DNA of 63,701 nucleotides, counting the filler, from Reticulomyxa filosa (taxonomy: Eukaryota; Protista; Foraminifera), in NCBI GenBank assembly GCA_000512085.1. It is 15 parts of 15 records of this genome, joined end to end, with 100 filler letters (N's around TTAATTAATTAA, not from the genome) between each part and the next. Parts side by side here need not be neighbours in the genome. Positions count along the whole stretch, not along the records: positions 29,683 to 39,789 come from ASPP01011146.1; 14 more parts are not named here. One strand, given 5' to 3'. Position 1 is the first letter of the stretch, and the number at the start of each line of letters is the position of its first letter. The notes below the pieces were generated by a model that saw nothing but the letters and a program-made list of their open reading frames with translations, was not told where the DNA came from and did no database searches. The position numbers and the translations under genes were made by a program. Below, one piece after another: positions 29,583-39,789 of this stretch.

Positions 29583-29707
29583 NNNNNNNNNNNNNNNNNN
29601 NNNNNNNNNNNNNNNNNNNNNNNNNNTTAATTAATTAANNNNNNNNNNNNNNNNNNNNNNNNNNNNNNNNNNNNNNNNNNNNAAAAAAAAAAAAAAAAAA
29701 AAAATTT

Positions 29708-30439
29708 TTTTTTTTTTTTTTTTTGGACCTGCAATAAATTGCCTGAAATACGTGCGCCCCACGACTGGTTCCAAAGCGGAGGTGTAGTACAGTATGTCAA
29801 ACAACTCTCCACCTGGCGCAAATTCGAGGACCAACAAAACGCAATCAAGTTTCTCGCTGTTTTTTGTTGGGTATTTTGCATTCAAGTTATAAGCATATAG
29901 TTTCATCACATTTTGATGGCGGATTTGTTTCAAAGAGTCAATTTCGGTTATTACTTGCTTCGACTATGCAGCATTTTTTTTGTAAATCAAGTTTGCAAGG
30001 TACGTAAAAAAAAAAAAAAAAAAGAAAATTCCTATTGTGTACGTCGCCCAATAACAGCATGATGAAACATTTACCTGTTCTTCAGCCCATGAATTGTCGG
30101 CTTTTGCCATAAATTTCAATGCCACACATTTTGAAGTTTTTTTGTCGTACCCTTTTTTTACCCTGGAATTTTATATGTATGTGCGTTTTTATTGGTTTAG
30201 TATTTTTTAAAAAATAAAAAAAGGAGTGAAAAATTCGATGTTTCTAGCACTCACCAAGAATAACCACCCTTTCCAAGGGTTTCGCCGATGTACCATCTGC
30301 CAATTGAACGATACTTTTTCTTGTATTCATCTTTTTTTTCAGACGATTCGGCTTCTTCATTTTCTGTGGCGGTAGAACCTCCTTGTTTTACGGAATGATC
30401 ACTTTCTTCTGATTTCAAGTCCAGTTCCGTGTCCTCCAT
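29708..30439 (-). CDS. Ser/Thr protein kinase (CAMK/AMPK-like), 3' partial
   Basis: IGETLGKGGYSW|VKKG, VALKFM, EIDSLKQIRHQNVMKL, LVLEFAPGGELFD. Confidence 0.9.
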
Positions 30440-30805
30440 TTCAGTAATGTCAAGAATTGAACAGTGATGAAGCTAAACGGGATATTTCAAAGCGCTAAAC
30501 TAAAGAAAAACTTTTTTTTTTGGCACTATATTTTTGTTATTTAAAAACCATTCTATAACCACAATTGCTTTAATGCAGACTATTTCAATTCCTAAAAAAA
30601 CCTGGTGTGATGGGAAAAAAATTCGTCTTATTCAAAAAACAACGGGAAGATTAAGTAAAAATCGAGAATTAATTTACGTTAAAAAAGTGATAATAGTGAA
30701 AGCCGTAGTGAAACGTCAGGGGGAAAAATTTCATTAAACGTAATCATTCATGTGCTAGTATCTGCGATTCGTGCAAACGTGTGAAAGCAACCACCAAAAC
30801 CAAGA

Positions 30806-32010
30806 ATGAGAGAAATAGTATCTATCCATGGTTACTTTGTACTTTTATGTTGTTTTTGTTCCCAGAACACCTAAAAAAAGAATATCTCCGCTCAAGCAAA
30901 TGTGCAAGGGGAGCCAAGATGTCCTGGAACAGTGGCTCTGTGAAAAATGATCAGACAAATGAATTGAGGATGCTTGATGATAATATGTATGCACATGGGG
31001 GGGGGGGAAAAAAATATCTGTAATAGTGGGCCAATGTGGCATTGGGATGGGCCATGAATTTTGGAAGCATTTGAACGAGGAAGCAATTCTGAACGTGTCG
31101 GGAGAGCCGGAAGAAAACCACCCATTCCATGAAACGCAGATCGACGAATTCCAAGAGAAGGACTTGAATCGCTATGACTACGAGTTGCAAATATTTACAA
31201 AGAGGCGAGTCGTCGAAAGAAGTTTGTGCCTCGATGCTTGTTCGTGGATTTGGAGGAGTCGTGTACAGACAAGGTATTGGCATCGGAGCACGGCAAGTTG
31301 TTTGACCCCGATTCGTTCATTACAAGTCGAGGTGGTACAGGAAGTTTGTTTGCAGTGGGACATTACACTGACGGTATATACATATACATATATACATAAT
31401 TTTTTTTTTTTTTTTTGAAACATATAAATTAAAATATTATTTATATGTTTAACAAAAAAAAAAAAAAAAGGGGCCTATCAAATTCGTTCGATTTTAGAAA
31501 TGTTACGAAAAGAACTGGAGGGATGCGATGCCCCACTTGCTTTTAGCCTTGGACACAGTCTGAGTGGAGGCACTGGGAGTGGCTTGGGCACGTTGATTTT
31601 GACACGTTTGGCCGACGAATTTACGGATGTATTACGGGTATCGCAGAGCGTGTTTCCTTCGCCGGGGATGGCGGGGGACCAAAACTTAGCGCCGTTCAAC
31701 AGCTTGTGCGCGTTCAACATGTTGGCGGAGTTTTGCGACCAGGTGTACTTGTTTGACAACTCGGCGCTGAACAACTGTCTGTCCACGTATCTGCGGTTGG
31801 AAAAGCCGGAATTGAAAGATCTCAATCGACTGTTGGCATACGTACAATGTCACGTCACTTCGCCCATGCGATATCCCGGGAAGCTGGCCAGTGACCTGCG
31901 CAAGATGGGCACCAATTTGATTCCTTTCCCACGCTTAAAATTCTTGGGGTTGTCGCAGTCTCCCATTTGTTTTGAGTTTGATTTGCGAAACGAAGTTATA
32001 ACATTCAAAC

Positions 32011-32046
<36 letters not shown>

Positions 32047-33859
32047 ATCAATTACGTACACAAAACAATTTATATACATTATGTAATTGATTCAAATTTT
32101 TTTTTTTTTTTTAGAAATTACCTTGGAATGTGTGACAGAGCTGGTCAATGGCTGGACCGAAACGACTTGGACAAAATGTGTTGCACCCGGACAATAGTTT
32201 GACTTCGATCGATGTCGAGTCGGGCAAGTTTTTAAGCTCGGCGATGATTTGGAGGGGAAACATGTTCACTGCCGAGTGGGAGACGTTGGGGCCAGAAATC
32301 CGCCAACGAATGAGCGAATTTTCCATTTCCTGGATCCCTTGTAACATACAAATGATCCATGCTCGAGGAGGGCCTATCGAGTCCAATCTTAGCTGCACCT
32401 TAGTTGGAAACCATACCGGCATTCGAAAAATCTTCCAGCAAAATATTCAAAATTTCAATAAATTTTTCAAGTTAAAAAAAAAAAAAAATCTTTTTTTTGC
32501 AATATACGTATTCCAAAAAAAAATTTTTTTTTTTTTTTTTTTTTTTTTGGAAATGTTGTGATCGCCAGCAAAGGTGCCTTTGTGCATCACTATACGAAAG
32601 AGGGCATGGAAAAAGAGTTTTTCGAAGAAGCTCGCGAAAACTTGAAAGACTTATGCTCGGAATACCAATCGAAAGAAGACATTGAGGTTCGGATGGAAGA
32701 GGTGGCGTTCGAACTCAGCGATCGCGTATATCACGATTATGTTGTCAGCAAAAACCGGAATCGCTCGTATGACTACAAATACCGCGCTTACTCCTTGGAC
32801 GAATCGGACGACGATGCCCCCTTCAACACATACTACGCAGACAAGCAAAAGGTTCACAAAAAAACTGTCACTGTCGCGCGCAATAACAAACAAATAAAAG
32901 CGCGCAATCATTATTACGACGAAAAAGACGAAGACGAAGATGAAGAAGAAAAGGAAGAAGAGGACCAGGGAAACGATGATAACGATGATAACGATGATGA
33001 CGATGAAGATGGGAATGAAAGAGAAAAAGCAAATGATACAGAAGAAACAGAAGAAACCGCAACAACAGAGGGGACACAAGACACTGAAGAGACTGAGGAG
33101 ACTGAAGAAGCGGAAGAAGAAGAAGAAGCAGAAGACGAAGAGGAAGAAGAAGCGGAGGAAATAGAGGAGGCTGAAGAAGCAGACGAAGAAGAAGATACAG
33201 AGACAAAGGAGAAAGAAGAAGATGATGACGATAATAAAAATGATGATGATGAAAATAATGATGGTGATAAGGAGGACGATGATACTGAAAAGCAAACGGA
33301 GGAAACAGAGAGCGGAAGTGAGGAAGAAAAGTATGAACAACCCAAAAAAGAGAGAAAAAAACCCCCGGAAAAAGTACGACCTCAAAATGTCATTGTGCAC
33401 AAAAGTGATGACGCAACGAAAAAAGAAACCCCCAGAAAAAATCAGATTCGGCATGTAAGGTTTGCGGATGATGCTGATCCCGACCAAACTGATAATGTAA
33501 AAGAAGACAAAGACAACGAAGACGAGGATGAAGTGCTCTTGGATACTTATTTTGACGATGAAGACGATAATAACCAAGAAGAGGAAAAGGAGGAGGAAGA
33601 CGGAGAAGACGAATTACAACTGGATGACGAGTCTCAACAAGAAGACGAAGACGAAGACGAAGATGAATTGGATGGTGATGATATTGAGGATGAAGTAGAA
33701 GAAGACGAAGAAGCAGAGGAAGAAGCAGAGGAAGAGGCTGGTGATGAAGAAGCCGATGAACCAGAAGAACAAGAGCAGGATAGTGAGAACGAAGATGAGG
33801 CAGAGGAGGAAGAAGAAAATTTGACAGACGAAGAAGCGGAGGAAGAATCTGAAGACTAA
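30806..33859 (+). CDS. Highly divergent beta-type tubulin with an acidic C-terminal extension of about 390 aa; join(30806-30830,31027-31373,31471-31994,32139-32470,32569-33859), 1-nt frameshift at about 31195
   Basis: MREIVSIH|VGQCG, FVPRCLFVDLE, GHYTD|GA, HSLSGGTGSG, FDNSAL, DLRKMGTNLIPFPRL, WIPCN, AFVHHYTKEGME, SEYQ. All four GT-AG introns are phase-compatible. Exons total 2519 nt; one extra nt gives 840 codons. Confidence 0.92.
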
Positions 33860-34452
33860 CTCAGATTTTGAACCACACAATCAAGAGTTTTGTGAAAAAA
33901 AAAATGAATATGTAAGTGAAAATGATTGCCGACGAGCAAATGTATAAGACGAAGAAGAACAATGAATACAACAATCATTGTATGATAAGATATCTTTTGT
34001 GATTTTGTGATGTTCGCTTTTTGTTTGTTTTGTCGCTTCAATGGATATGCACATTACCATTACTTTTAGCACTATTGTTGCACAAGGCAATGTGTAAACA
34101 TTATTTGCACTTTCTTGATTGCTCAAGAGATATTTTGTGAGTATCTTTTGTCACAATCCCAATATTACGAGCTAGTTGAGGAAACTTTTCATTTTATTTA
34201 AAAGTGTAGTACTTGTTGATCTTCAAATAACAGCAAAAAACTAACTTCTCCATAAAAGATGCCAATTGAATTTTGCTTCATTGAAAGATAGCTTATAAGC
34301 GAGGATTACAAAAGAAAAAAAAGAGATTTAAATTAAAAAAGTTGTTAAATTAGAAAAATCACGACACCTAAACATAACAATTTATCAACATTCATTGTAA
34401 GTTGAAAAGAATTCTTTTTTTCTCGTTGTGGGAAAGAAAAAACAAATAACAG

Positions 34453-36773
34453 CTACACAAAGCCCATGAGTTTATCAAAGGCTCTTTTTTCTTCCCTGCC
34501 TTGTGTCCTTTCCCTTTTGCCTACTTGTCTATTGATATATGGATTGGATTTGTGGTGTGTTTTATTGGAGCGAATAAAACTCGGCAAAATATTGTGCGTT
34601 GTGATCCGAGGAAGAATATCAGGAGAATCGGAAAAATTTGGCTTGATGTGATTGTCATCATCTCCACTATCATCACCATCAAATTGCTGATAACGGAAAG
34701 TATTGGAATGAAAGAGGTCCATCGAACGCATAGGATTATCACGAGCCGAGGATAGCGAGTGATGTGTCATTACTTGACAAGACTTATTTTGATCTTTGCA
34801 TTTGAAATCGGCTGGAATAGGATTTGGTTGAACGGGAAGGGTATTACTCTGATGCGTATCATCACCTTCAATATCGCTTTCACCAGCAACAGCGTAATAC
34901 CACCACAAGTGATTAAAAGGTTGTGTTTTATCCAAATGCAAATCCAAAGACAAATCTGGGAGGTTTCCATAATGCAGACAATCAGGCGACACATTTTCTT
35001 TTTCAACCATTTTTTCAGGTTTGGATACTTGACCACTTCCTTTTGGACGGCCACGTTTCCGTTTTGATGAGAAATCAGTGATTAGGTCTAGGCCTGGTTT
35101 TTGTTTCGTGTTTTTATTTTTGCTGCCCTTTGGTCGTCCCCGTTTTCGTTTTACTACTGCTTCACCTCCTTTCTCTTGTCCTAACATAGCATTCATATCC
35201 TTCTCTTTCAATGGCATTGGCATTGGCACTCCTCTGTCACGCAGCCTTGAATGAATTGATCTTTCTTCTGTCTGTTTCGCACCCGTTTTCATATGCTTGC
35301 TTGTTGTTGTCATCATTGACACAGTGGGTGTTGCCTTTACCGGCGTACAAACATCTGAACCGTGCCAGCGTTTTTTGTTGGCCTTGTTCTCGCCAAGTTT
35401 TGTCATTGCCAAAGGTGCAGCGGTAGGGGGCACAGCAAATCCAACTTCTGCGCTCCACATGTTATTGCCTGACAACGATGACGATGACGATGACACCGAC
35501 GTAGACGCCATGCCGTTGATATCCATTGTTGCTTTGTTCATTCTCAAGCTTGAAATGTAATCCAATGAGTTTTCTCTACGCTCTCGCGGACGTCGTGAAT
35601 GCTTATGGGAACCATGGCCATGTCGTGTTTGGAAAACGCTTCTTTTGGTGGAATAGTTCATCAGCTCACTTGAATGCCTTTTTTCCATGTGGTCCAACAT
35701 CATTGACATCGATGCCGTCGCCAACGACGATGACGACAGCGGTTGGGGAAAAGAAGAGGAAGAGGAAGCAAGAGGAGGAAGAAGGGGAGAGGGAGGAGAA
35801 GGAGGAGACAAGGACAAGTTCGGATTTGCCAAAGACGGCAACAACGAGGTACCATTATTCATCCCAAAGATATCCACTTTCATTTGCGTTACCAATGGCG
35901 GCACCGCACTATCCGACGAACTGAGATTGCATTCTGATTGTTCTTCTTTCTCACCGTTCAATACTTCATTCAAATTACCAAACTCCCCTTCATCGCTACA
36001 ATTGCTATCGTCACGACGCAGACCTTTATTCAAAAAAAAAAAAAAAAAATGATCACAGAATTTACTATTGTTTGGAATAATGTTCTTTTTTTGTTTTTAT
36101 TTATTTGTTTTTTTTGATACAAGATATGTATGCGTATGCTTTTATATGCAAAATACAAGCTACGTATACAAATTTTTTTTTCACAAAGGAGGAAAAAAAA
36201 AAAAGGGAGGACCCAACAAAAATAAGGCTGTGTGTTTGTTAACACACCGTTAAGGAAAGGCAGATTGGTATTCATATTCATTGCTACGGGCATCCCAAAT
36301 TCCAGGTCCAAGCCTTCCATCGACAACATCTGTGTGACACTTGCTGAGTCGAGATGGTTGGCTGCGCTTTGGAAAAACAGCCCCGAATTGTTGCCATCAC
36401 TACTGTCCGTGTTTTGATACTGCGGCGTCATTACATCATTTGGATAATCACCTGTGGGCAAAAAAGATACTATTGGATAGTCTATTGTGTTATTACTGGA
36501 ATCTGAATTTGGACTTGATGTTGCTGAATCGTGCGCAATCTTTCGCCTTTTGGGAAGGGGCTCTAGTGATCCTGAGGAACAAAAGGTCTGTGAGGATTTA
36601 ACAAGTATTTATTCCATAACAACAAACGTCGAGCTGCCTTGTGAAAAAGTGAAAAAGTAAAAATATAAACTTAGTCTTACATCAAAGGCGTCATCTTGTA
36701 ACGTAGAAATAACTCCATCAGACATAACATTTCCGTTCATCAAATCTGGATAGTCCCAATTCATAATGTTCAT
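34453..36773 (-). CDS. AT-hook-containing disordered nuclear protein, about 3 exons
   Basis: Two KRKRGRPKGS AT-hooks in the 526-aa ORF. Upstream exons run from ATG 36773 with a GTAAG donor near 36680. Confidence 0.75.
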
Positions 36774-37960
36774 TGTTTAAGCACACTTTTTTTTTACTAC
36801 AAAAAAACGTCAGAAAATCTACCCTTAGAAATAATTGAGATTTTTACATGCAAAATTAACATTTTCTTTAAAATCTCTTTTTCATATATATCTACAAGTT
36901 ATGCAAAAACCAAAAACGTATTTGATTTTTAATAAAAATTTCTCAAAATTTAAAAATAATAATTTTTGTTGTGGTATTTTGAGAAATTTTAAACAAATGA
37001 ATATTGTTTCACACTTTTATCTATTGGCTAAATCTTTTCTTTGCTTTTTACTGAAACTTGTGTTCTGAACTAAGTTTGTTTCGTCTTACACTTTGTCTAA
37101 CTGTCACCACAGGTAGATTTTAATGTTTTTTATGCAGTAAATTATACGTATTCTTCATTTAATACATAACTTCGCATGCAGCTATAATTTTTGTATTCCA
37201 TTTATTTAAATTGAATAACTACAAAAATGCATTTCATTATTATCATATTGTCATTTTTATAATATTTATCAAACATTTCATCAAACAAATCTAAAATAAA
37301 CAAATAACATATTTTCACGAATACTATAGGTCATTCCTTTATTGTGTTGTTTTATTCATAAATTTTTGGAAATAGTCAACTATTATAACATTTTTGATGA
37401 ATATAAATAAAAATTAATATTCCAACAAAATTCATATCTCATTTCTATTGGATTGAATTACAAAGCTGATCATAGCAAATTTAGCAAATTTTAACTAATA
37501 ATTTTTGTCCTTGATTTCTTTATTTATTCCTTTTAATTGTAATGGTTTTAAGTTCAAGTTCCCGAATGCAGCTTGGAACAATTTGCAATTTTCAATTTAC
37601 CTGATCAATTTACATTATGTCATTAATTTTAGAATGTTTCACTTTCTTGTTTAATGTGATAGTTACTCCTTATTTTTCAAAGTTAAGCACAACTTATGTA
37701 ACGTAGTAAGTGAAATTTTATATTGATATATCAGCTACTGTACCTATTTATCTTACGACTTTTAAAGTTATTGAACTTAGTATATTATTAATTTTTTTCT
37801 TTTAAATCTTAATATCCATTATATTTTATGTCATTTTCAATTTATTTATTACTTTTTTCAAAATTTATCATTTTATTGTGCTTCACAATACTTATTCAAT
37901 TTGAGAGTAAGTCTTAGTAACACTTATTGTACTTGACGTATAGTCTCTCCAACATAAATA

Positions 37961-38327
37961 CAGTATAATGCAAAGTAAAGTTGACACCTAAAACAGCACC
38001 TTATAGAAATGATTGATTTTCTACATGAAAAAACAACATCCAGACTTAATTTTTTAAAAAATATCTACAAATCGTGTACTTTTTAAATATCATTTTGGTT
38101 TTTCCTTTTTTTTTTGTAGTAAGATTGTTTTTAATGAAAATTACAATATGGTTAAATCACTTTTTGCATTGTATACTGCTGTATTTTCTCTGGAATTGAT
38201 TTTGTTAAATTTGTGCATGTTCCTTTGTCATTTTTTTAACATTCTAATTCAAATTGTTTCCGGGATTCTTCTTTCGATCGGAATGGTCAATTTTTGAATA
38301 TTTTCGTTTTCAATATCCACCACAAAG
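37961..38327 (-). mobile_element. Truncated Tc1 copy: TIR plus 3' end of the transposase
   Basis: TA|CAGTATAATGCAAAGTAAAGTTGACACC TIR. Segment about 38150-38327 is collinear with about 2378-2555 (LWWILKTKIFKN). Confidence 0.88.
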
Positions 38328-39752
38328 TAGCGAAAGCGGACCTGGAAGCAGCATTGAAAGGCAATGCCGAAATATCGGCTTTTTGGGATAGCAGCGAGCA
38401 AACAGTATGTGTTTTTGGAAGCCATGAAGAGTGATCATCCAACAAGTCATTTTTTAGAACTCCTCGTTTCCATAGGACTGATAATGTGTGCATAAAGTCA
38501 CACAAAAAAAGCAGAAAGATTGCAAATGTGTGAAATTGTATTTGAGATGCAGATACAGTGGACGCAATGACTGGTCTGTATCATGAGTTGAAAGCGCACA
38601 AAGTGATAGTTATTGAATTGACTATCGATCTAATTATTGTTGCGAGAAAGACATTATATCGAAAGTGACAGATTTTCTACTGTGAATAGAAGTACTTGTG
38701 AAGTTTTGAAATAATTTAAGATTGTATGTAGTAGATATTACGAACTAGTATTTGCACCATTTACAATATTGAGAGGAAATTTGCAAGACTAAGTCGTTGT
38801 TCAGCATACACTGACTATTTAATAATATTTAAAAGCTATTTGACGTTAGTACATTCTTAGTGATTTGCTAAAATTTGTTGGTTCGATATGCAAACTTTAA
38901 ACATAATATGTATGACTAGCTAGCACAAATCGATTTGAGTAAGTTGAAGCATTCACTTAATTGTCATTTACTATGATATTTTCAATTAGTGTGACTATTA
39001 CATAAAAGCAGCTTTACGAATAATATAATGTTTTATGTGTTGTTGATTGAAAGCACAACAGTAGCTACGATTATCTAAGTTATGTAGTTCTGTCCGAACA
39101 TTATTGATATATCGAACGAAATTATATTAAACATACTTTGCAGTCTTGCAGCAAAATGATTGAATCATTTACATTGATAGTGTAAACGAACTGATTTTTA
39201 TACTGTATAGCAAATCAATATTGTCACTTCATTTAAGTGCAACTTTAGTAAATGCTAATTGAAACAACAATACTAATATATTTATCACTTTTCACGAACT
39301 AACTAGTAATTATATTTTCTGTAAATTTGGCATTTGATCAACATGACGACAGCATTTACACTAACAAAGGAAACTTCAAGTTCCGACATCATTAAGGTGA
39401 TTTCTTGAATAGCAAGTATTTGATTTGGCAAATACTTTATAAATCGTGCCAGAAATGTATTGTATGTCGATATGAATATTGACGTAAAGAGCAATCGCTT
39501 ACAAAAACTCGAACAATTCAAGCAATTGAAAAGCAAAACATTGAAAACTATATATTGCTAATCAGGTTTGTCAAAACAACGACTGACAATATTTCGATTG
39601 ACAGTAGCCGAAATATCGTAGTCACTTGGAAAACATTTCCAATAACTGTTTGACTTGTATAACTAACTGCAGGAATTGCAAATAGAATTTAGTTTCGAAC
39701 TTGTTGACTAATAAATAATGATCAGTCATTGTAATGATCTACAATCATAATA

Positions 39753-39789
39753 CAGTAGATTGCAAAAAAAACCGCCATACCTAAATGGC
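39753..39789. mobile_element. Probable TIR start of a related Tc1-like subfamily, cut by the contig end
   Basis: TA|CAGTAGATTGCAAAAAAAACCGCCATACCTAAATGGC resembles CAGTAGAATGCAAAGTAAAGTTGACACCTAAAATGGC. Confidence 0.55.

Follow-up and report, generated by a model that had tools for sequence, protein, structure and literature searches.

Our analyses identify, in the foraminiferan Reticulomyxa filosa, a tubulin gene whose last exon runs without a break from the end of the tubulin fold into a giant acidic C-terminal tail, together with a second gene in which the same fold continues into a homologous tail start. These data are best explained by a Reticulomyxa family of at least two paralogues, in which very divergent, beta-derived tubulins carry a long polyanionic tail in the last exon. 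The long-tailed beta-tubulin is an already known kind of protein, and what appears distinctive of the R. filosa genes, judging from their sequences, is the extreme divergence of the body, the worn nucleotide face and the selection acting on the linker that joins fold and tail.

Background

The C-terminal tails of tubulins, normally a few dozen residues long, are the part through which the 'tubulin code' mainly operates. Foraminifera combine a very fast microtubule turnover with a helical-filament state of their tubulin, and belong to a lineage, the Retaria, whose beta2-tubulin was reportedly treated by Habura in 2005 and Hou in 2013. Expansions of alpha2- and beta2-tubulin in Retaria were reported by Krabberod et al. 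2017 (PMC5455982), in which term searches found no mention of long tails. The main requirement of the helical filaments is the loss of the longitudinal contact between beta- and alpha-tubulin (PMC4990898).

Results and discussion

Locus and gene structure

The window, i.e. the whole stretch of 63,701 nucleotides (filler included) that was analysed, contains at positions 29683-39789 the R. filosa contig ASPP01011146 (10,107 bp). Manual reading of its sequence yielded a tubulin gene of five exons on the plus strand, coding for about 839 aa (Table 1), with a summed exon length of 2,519 bases, i.e. 839 codons plus the stop minus one base. All four introns are GT-AG, and introns 2-4, at 9-18% GC, contain A/T stretches of 17-25 bases. 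In the NCBI annotation the locus is divided between two genes, one for a partial beta-tubulin of 299 aa (ETO21975.1), the other a model of 526 aa that lacks a recorded Pfam match and has the same stop as the hand-read gene; because the gene is cut in two in this way, it is invisible in databases. Two splicing alternatives were rejected: a TTTTAG acceptor at 32114, which entails an in-frame stop and for which the paralogue backs 32139 instead, and the NCBI intron within exon 2, which would remove the conserved FVPR..VDLE strand. Searches were run per exon, the joined five-exon model entering no search, fold or tree, and in the trees the R. filosa pair was represented by the database proteins P0001 and P0002.

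The two halves of exon 2, in different frames, match Pfam Tubulin at model positions 8-39 and 36-86. The residues added in its H1-S2 loop (window 31060-31190), which faces the microtubule lumen and the lateral contact, are mostly acidic. Both neighbours of the gene lie on the minus strand. A protein kinase gene fragment (29766-30439), cut by the contig edge, is divergently oriented to the tubulin gene, the two starts lying about 370 bp apart, and a 652-aa low-complexity gene model without any Pfam match (34453-36773) probably codes for a chromatin protein, since it contains two AT-hook-like RGRPKG motifs.

Table 1. Parts of the R. filosa tubulin gene (window positions) and foraminiferan transcripts coding for beta-tubulins with long tails.
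Feature	Position	Strand	Description
Exon 1	30806-30830	+	encodes MREIVSIH, the usual tubulin N-terminus; in-frame join to GQCG; omitted by NCBI model
Intron 1	after exon 1	+	196 nt, GT-AG, 39% GC
Exon 2	31027-31373	+	GTPase domain T1-T3; ~16 extra residues in H1-S2 loop; contains frame break
Frame break	31190-31196	+	one base missing at short T run in exon 2
Exon 3	31471-31994	+	signature loop SGGTGSG, T5-T7, H8, K254; Pfam Tubulin 5.7e-19
Exon 4	32139-32470	+	intermediate domain to H11; Pfam Tubulin_C 1.6e-14; junctions also in paralogue
Exon 5	32569-33859	+	end of fold, then tail and stop codon
Exon 5, first part	32569-32680	+	H11'-H12, end = SEYQSKED; E410, D417, E421 retained; 85% identity to paralogue
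Linker	32681-32914	+	78 aa, Tyr-rich (9 Tyr), net +2; first 49 codons conserved in paralogue
First D/E block	32915-33334	+	140 aa, net -77; paralogue likewise acidic here to its contig end
Basic island	33335-33463	+	42 aa (to 33460), net +8; contains KKERKK
Second D/E block and stop	33461-33859	+	132 aa (to 33856), net -81
Elphidium margaritaceum P0076	L003 34-2151		transcript; tail 241 aa
P0180, second sample			MMETSP transcript; tail 271 aa
Nonionella stella P0069			transcript; tail 101 aa

Assignment to the beta type

Membership of the tubulin superfamily is indicated by Pfam Tubulin and Tubulin_C matches of the individual exons and by the SGGTGSG loop. Residue 254 is Lys in beta-, Glu in alpha- and Gly in gamma-tubulins, and in both R. 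filosa paralogues it is Lys (DLRK), which, together with best matches to beta, agrees with the foraminiferan beta-type tubulin proposed in the initial annotation. The best 60 PDB sequence matches of exon 3 are all beta. Beta references also give the highest scores for exons 2b-5, those of beta2 leading by a small margin in exons 2b, 3, 4 and 5; epsilon ranks last or close to last for exons 2b, 4 and 5 in a reference set comprising neither delta nor zeta. The pair is just ~35% identical to either beta1 or beta2, and the sites diagnostic of the two are split 12 beta1 : 13 beta2. In a structural model of the paralogue body (pLDDT 86) the top fold matches were PDB beta chains (TM 0.90-0.92), the model being built on a beta alignment and its fold match to beta therefore not independent.

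The trees left out most of the 300 fetched proteins, i.e. near-copies, fragments and tandem models, and the fetched set contained no delta- or zeta-tubulin. A 54-row tree nested the R. filosa pair within beta (99/93; stem, 1.5 changes per column) and outside the starred beta2 clade; a 28-row tree likewise nested it within beta (94/91) and did not resolve its placement relative to beta2. Over both trees, in which the rows of the pair are partial, the stem measured 1.5-2.3 changes per column. AU tests did not reject a placement next to gamma (p-AU 0.16) or alpha (p-AU 0.14). Given the low identity, the tree placements and these AU tests, the pair is classed from its sequence as a beta-type tubulin and filed as neither beta1 nor beta2. 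A weak tree neighbour of the pair, P0063, is likely to reflect long-branch attraction. A marine metagenome contig (L004 1004-4014) carries a tandem pair of divergent tubulin genes, both without introns, next to a reverse transcriptase.

A paralogue with a homologous tail start

A search with exon 3 among 1.84 billion representatives returned two close matches, the gene itself and ETO28571.1 (85%), followed by generic tubulins at <=48%. No close relative in another species was found among these representatives or in a metagenome scan, and the ESM Atlas gave no match at 0.9. ETO28571.1 is encoded on the R. filosa contig ASPP01006593 (1,495 bp), where the three exon junctions of the exon 3-5 region agree with those of the window gene. 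Its last exon, which starts at about 1174 and is absent from the NCBI model, passes from the fold to a homologous linker, shorter than that of the window gene, and then to acidic residues, remaining open for 74 codons up to the contig end.

Between the window gene and the paralogue, dN/dS is 0.076 in exon 3 and 0.046 in exon 4, and the first 49 codons of the linker, i.e. those covered by the dN/dS estimate among the 74 tail codons that the comparison reaches, show 55% identity with a dN/dS of 0.21 and a dS of about 1.7. Since dS between the paralogues is 1.2-1.7, with synonymous sites near saturation, and dN/dS is nevertheless low, selection has maintained the fold and the tail start at the protein level since the two genes duplicated long ago. 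The values of 0.05-0.08 for the core and 0.21 for the linker mean that real protein is encoded at least in the first part of the tail. The gene-encoded polyanionic tail originally proposed is thus under purifying selection at its start, and a chimeric join of fold and tail, named at that time as a result that would speak against it, is excluded because the paralogue continues into the homologous linker.

The frame break in exon 2

Exon 2 of the window gene carries a one-base frame break (Table 1) which, like the altered nucleotide site described below, was absent from the initial annotation. The GT-AG pairs that could bridge it are either all core-deleting, with an exon-like GC of 38-50%, or just 26 nt long, and one base restored in the T run gives a better match to other betas; the paralogue contig is without exon 2. 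The simplest reading would be that the fragmented draft assembly contains a homopolymer error at this site. Alternatively, the break may be genuine, the window gene being a recently inactivated duplicate of a functional paralogue and its tail the relic of a once-functional gene, in keeping with the result that no plausible intron removes the break. The window copy also has the longer end branch (0.13-0.16 vs 0.06-0.09), in a row that includes a mis-spliced NCBI stretch. We regard such an inactivation as unlikely, given that no stop or second break occurs over about 840 codons, that dN/dS stays at 0.05-0.08 across exons 3-5, and that the site of the break is a homopolymer run, of which this fragmented draft assembly has many.

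Structure and composition of the tail

The frame 32558-33859 is open over 433 codons, and the tail that follows SEYQSKED comprises 392 residues (32681-33856) uninterrupted by a stop, in line with the roughly 390 codons first noted. It is 48% D/E (190 acidic and 42 basic residues), with a net charge of -148 and a mass of about 46 kDa. Stops number 0 in the coding frame and 6 and 57 in the other two, while shuffled tails had a mean of ~23 and never 0 (20,000 mononucleotide and 5,000 Markov shuffles), so that the open frame lies far beyond chance of this kind. Codon periodicity is strong, with G making up 60% of first and A 70% of second positions, and the GC content of 43% compares with 9-18% in introns 2-4 and 29% downstream of the stop. 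This composition, and the lack of any long A/T run like those of introns 2-4, support a tail predicted to be uninterrupted by an intron; one fair donor-like GTAAGG occurs within it, at 33455. The order of linker, D/E block, basic island and second D/E block was found as initially described (Table 1). Single-sequence AlphaFold prediction of exon 5 gave a mean pLDDT of 44.5, a low confidence that is consistent with a disordered tail but uninformative.

The acidic blocks contain short tandem repeats of period 3-18 over much of their length, as would be expected if only the fold and a short linker were functional and the acidic length were mostly a near-neutral slippage expansion, of the sort found in other low-complexity proteins of the R. 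filosa genome, or partly spliced out. The neighbouring gene is also full of low-complexity runs, the linker of the paralogue is shorter, and chytrid tails are reported as not conserved across species (PMC4202323). Yet the repeats are degenerate (67-80% matches in long arrays) and their codons mixed, zero frame slips survive in 392 codons, and a comparable layout of four parts has been conserved between two foraminiferan transcriptomes; we therefore hold an essentially neutral origin of the acidic length to be very unlikely.

At the end of the basic island (window 33428-33463), a CDK-type TPRK (33428) adjoins an RVxF-type RHVRF (33449-33463), the RVxF consensus being taken from PMC4794898, with RVxF-like strings common by chance. 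The shuffle p of the motif is 0.008-0.017, uncorrected for the several motifs examined. RHVRF is a possible candidate for a PP1 docking site, and the RVxF string might form with the CDK-type site a putative phospho-switch. A homologue search with the linker gave no match, a blank that weighs little because the search missed even the annotated 526-aa model.

Wear of the nucleotide and plus-end faces

The surfaces were compared with residue lists based on tubulin structure. Identity to beta1, 38% overall, is 53% in T7-H8 and 54% in H12, but only 34% on the plus-end/nucleotide face, where beta2 keeps 75%. The changed nucleotide and plus-end residues are Q15G, P72E, G73S, N101S, N102L, E183A, Y224L and W407H; E183A and Y224L are common to both paralogues, while among 261 fetched K254 proteins E183 is present in 250 and Y/F224 in 239. 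With four of these changes (Q15G, N101S, E183A, Y224L) among its residues (Q15, N101, E183, N206, Y224, N228), the exchangeable GTP site appears not to be intact, although N206, N228, D69, E71 and the T4 loop are retained. The alpha-facing H10/S9 is worn (19% identical), so that heterodimer formation with alpha is not assured. Non-lattice tubulins act as capping, templating or scaffold-type proteins. The residues R262, E410, D417 and E421 (the last three in sequential beta numbering), which have a role in kinesin contact (PMC4735607), are all kept.

A real long-tailed protein could accordingly be placed off the lattice, as an end-cap, a template or a soluble scaffold, in which the degenerate plus-end face would stop elongation and the tail would serve as a docking platform through its PP1-type RVxF motif, its CDK site and its acidic, chaperone-like blocks. 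The eight substitutions, the wear of H10/S9, the placements next to gamma or alpha that were not rejected and the RHVRF motif (shuffle p about 0.01) all fit such a role, and very divergent Paramecium betas are probably structural blocks according to Findeisen et al. 2014 (PMC4202323). Nevertheless, K254, T7-H8 and the H12 kinesin contacts are kept, as they would be in a lattice subunit, RVxF-like strings are frequent by chance, and the paralogue contig ends before the island, which leaves a life off the lattice somewhat unlikely in our view.

Long-tailed tubulins in other organisms

Ordinary foraminiferan beta2 tails have a median of 36 aa and a maximum of 44 (n=73), which corrects the range of 15-25 aa initially taken as normal. 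Retarian beta2, from the same host lineage, has the KMGTNL and EYQxK patterns in common with the R. filosa pair, but keeps N101, E183 and Y224. Transcribed foraminiferan betas with charged tails of 101-271 aa (Table 1) form their own clade (100/99), and two of them, P0076 and P0180, have a conserved linker of ~110 aa followed by an acidic block, an island of poly-Lys and a final acidic stretch, i.e. the same order of linker, acid, basic and acid as in R. filosa. Unlike the R. filosa pair, these Elphidium and Nonionella betas have a net charge of only -33 to -51 and an intact nucleotide site. No significant alignment was found between their tails and the R. filosa linker or tail, and a grouping of the pair with their clade is absent from the best tree and not rejected by the AU test (p-AU 0.415). 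A metagenome scan for Elphidium-type tails returned generic betas only, and a literature search that included few subscription papers found no paper on long-tailed foraminiferan tubulins. Being expressed and apparently intact, the Elphidium and Nonionella proteins offer the easier way in. Two further Nonionella stella frames in EukProt, P0260 (kinesin, EF-hand and beta2-tubulin in 1,161 aa) and P0273 (beta-tubulin and NIF phosphatase in 924 aa), are probably chimeric transcripts.

Divergent beta-tubulin gene models with acidic tails were also found in Tritrichomonas musculus (P0304, 271 aa) and Anaeramoeba flamelloides (P0137/P0274, 84-92 aa). Long acidic tails of beta-tubulin, as predicted from sequence, recur in unrelated protists. 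Models that are long but look tandem or mis-predicted (P0005, P0019, P0056, P0067, P0118, P0156-P0209) were not counted.

For Chytridiomycota and Neocallimastigomycota, Findeisen et al. 2014 (PMC4202323) describe a beta-tubulin variant, known from gene structure, whose C-terminus is extended by up to 1,100 aa of low-complexity sequence; Reticulomyxa and Foraminifera are not mentioned in that paper. The R. filosa tail differs from the published description of the chytrid variant in being strongly acidic, on a body that matches beta at ~35% identity and has a worn nucleotide site, and the two extensions are probably independent since they occur in different supergroups. The undescribed class initially suggested may be compatible with the finding of no close relative in the other species searched, but is weakened by the long low-complexity beta tails already published for these fungi.

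A proposed role for the R. filosa proteins

The account that we tentatively favour is a long-tailed minor lattice subunit forming a charged spacer brush, with the frame break as an assembly error. The subunit would pair with alpha-tubulin through the retained T7-H8/K254 face and be incorporated in small proportion into microtubules or helical filaments; with H12 on the outer wall, linker and tail would then point outward as a charged brush, with an estimated contour length of about 140-150 nm, or roughly 10 nm as a coil. Such a brush might space neighbouring polymers and screen or attract basic motor and MAP domains, in resemblance to a projection domain without a separate MAP, while the worn nucleotide and plus-end face would loosen the longitudinal contact of beta with alpha and lead to pausing, breakage, capping or the helical-filament state. 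The roles first suggested for the tail, as spacer, projection domain or glutamylation mimic, are likewise hypothetical. On the other side, a tail of this charge should hinder assembly at high density, and the fact that an orthologue was not found in other species searched counts against the brush.

The projection domains of MAP2/tau, the tails of neurofilaments and polyglutamylation likewise provide polyanionic chains that project from a filament. Their likeness to the R. filosa tail, as long disordered polyanionic projections, serves as a working analogy without homology, and whereas these analogues depend on a binding protein or a reversible enzyme, the R. filosa chain is linear and gene-encoded; being part of the tubulin gene, its dose would therefore be set by the isotype ratio. 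A more far-reaching version, which we consider improbable, would see in the pair a distinct Reticulomyxa class beyond beta1 and beta2 that has lost normal GTP-dependent plus-end contacts, a lattice subunit triggering the switch from microtubule to helical filament and equipped with its own spacer and phosphatase dock, in a setting where long-tailed betas are recurrent in foraminiferan cytoskeletons.

Conclusions

A tubulin tail ten times longer than usual, with its high net negative charge, constitutes a natural test of the effects of length and charge on polymer spacing, motor access and stability. Furthermore, a beta-type subunit whose alpha-facing loop is intact and whose plus-end face is worn is a candidate for the basis of the helical filaments of Foraminifera.
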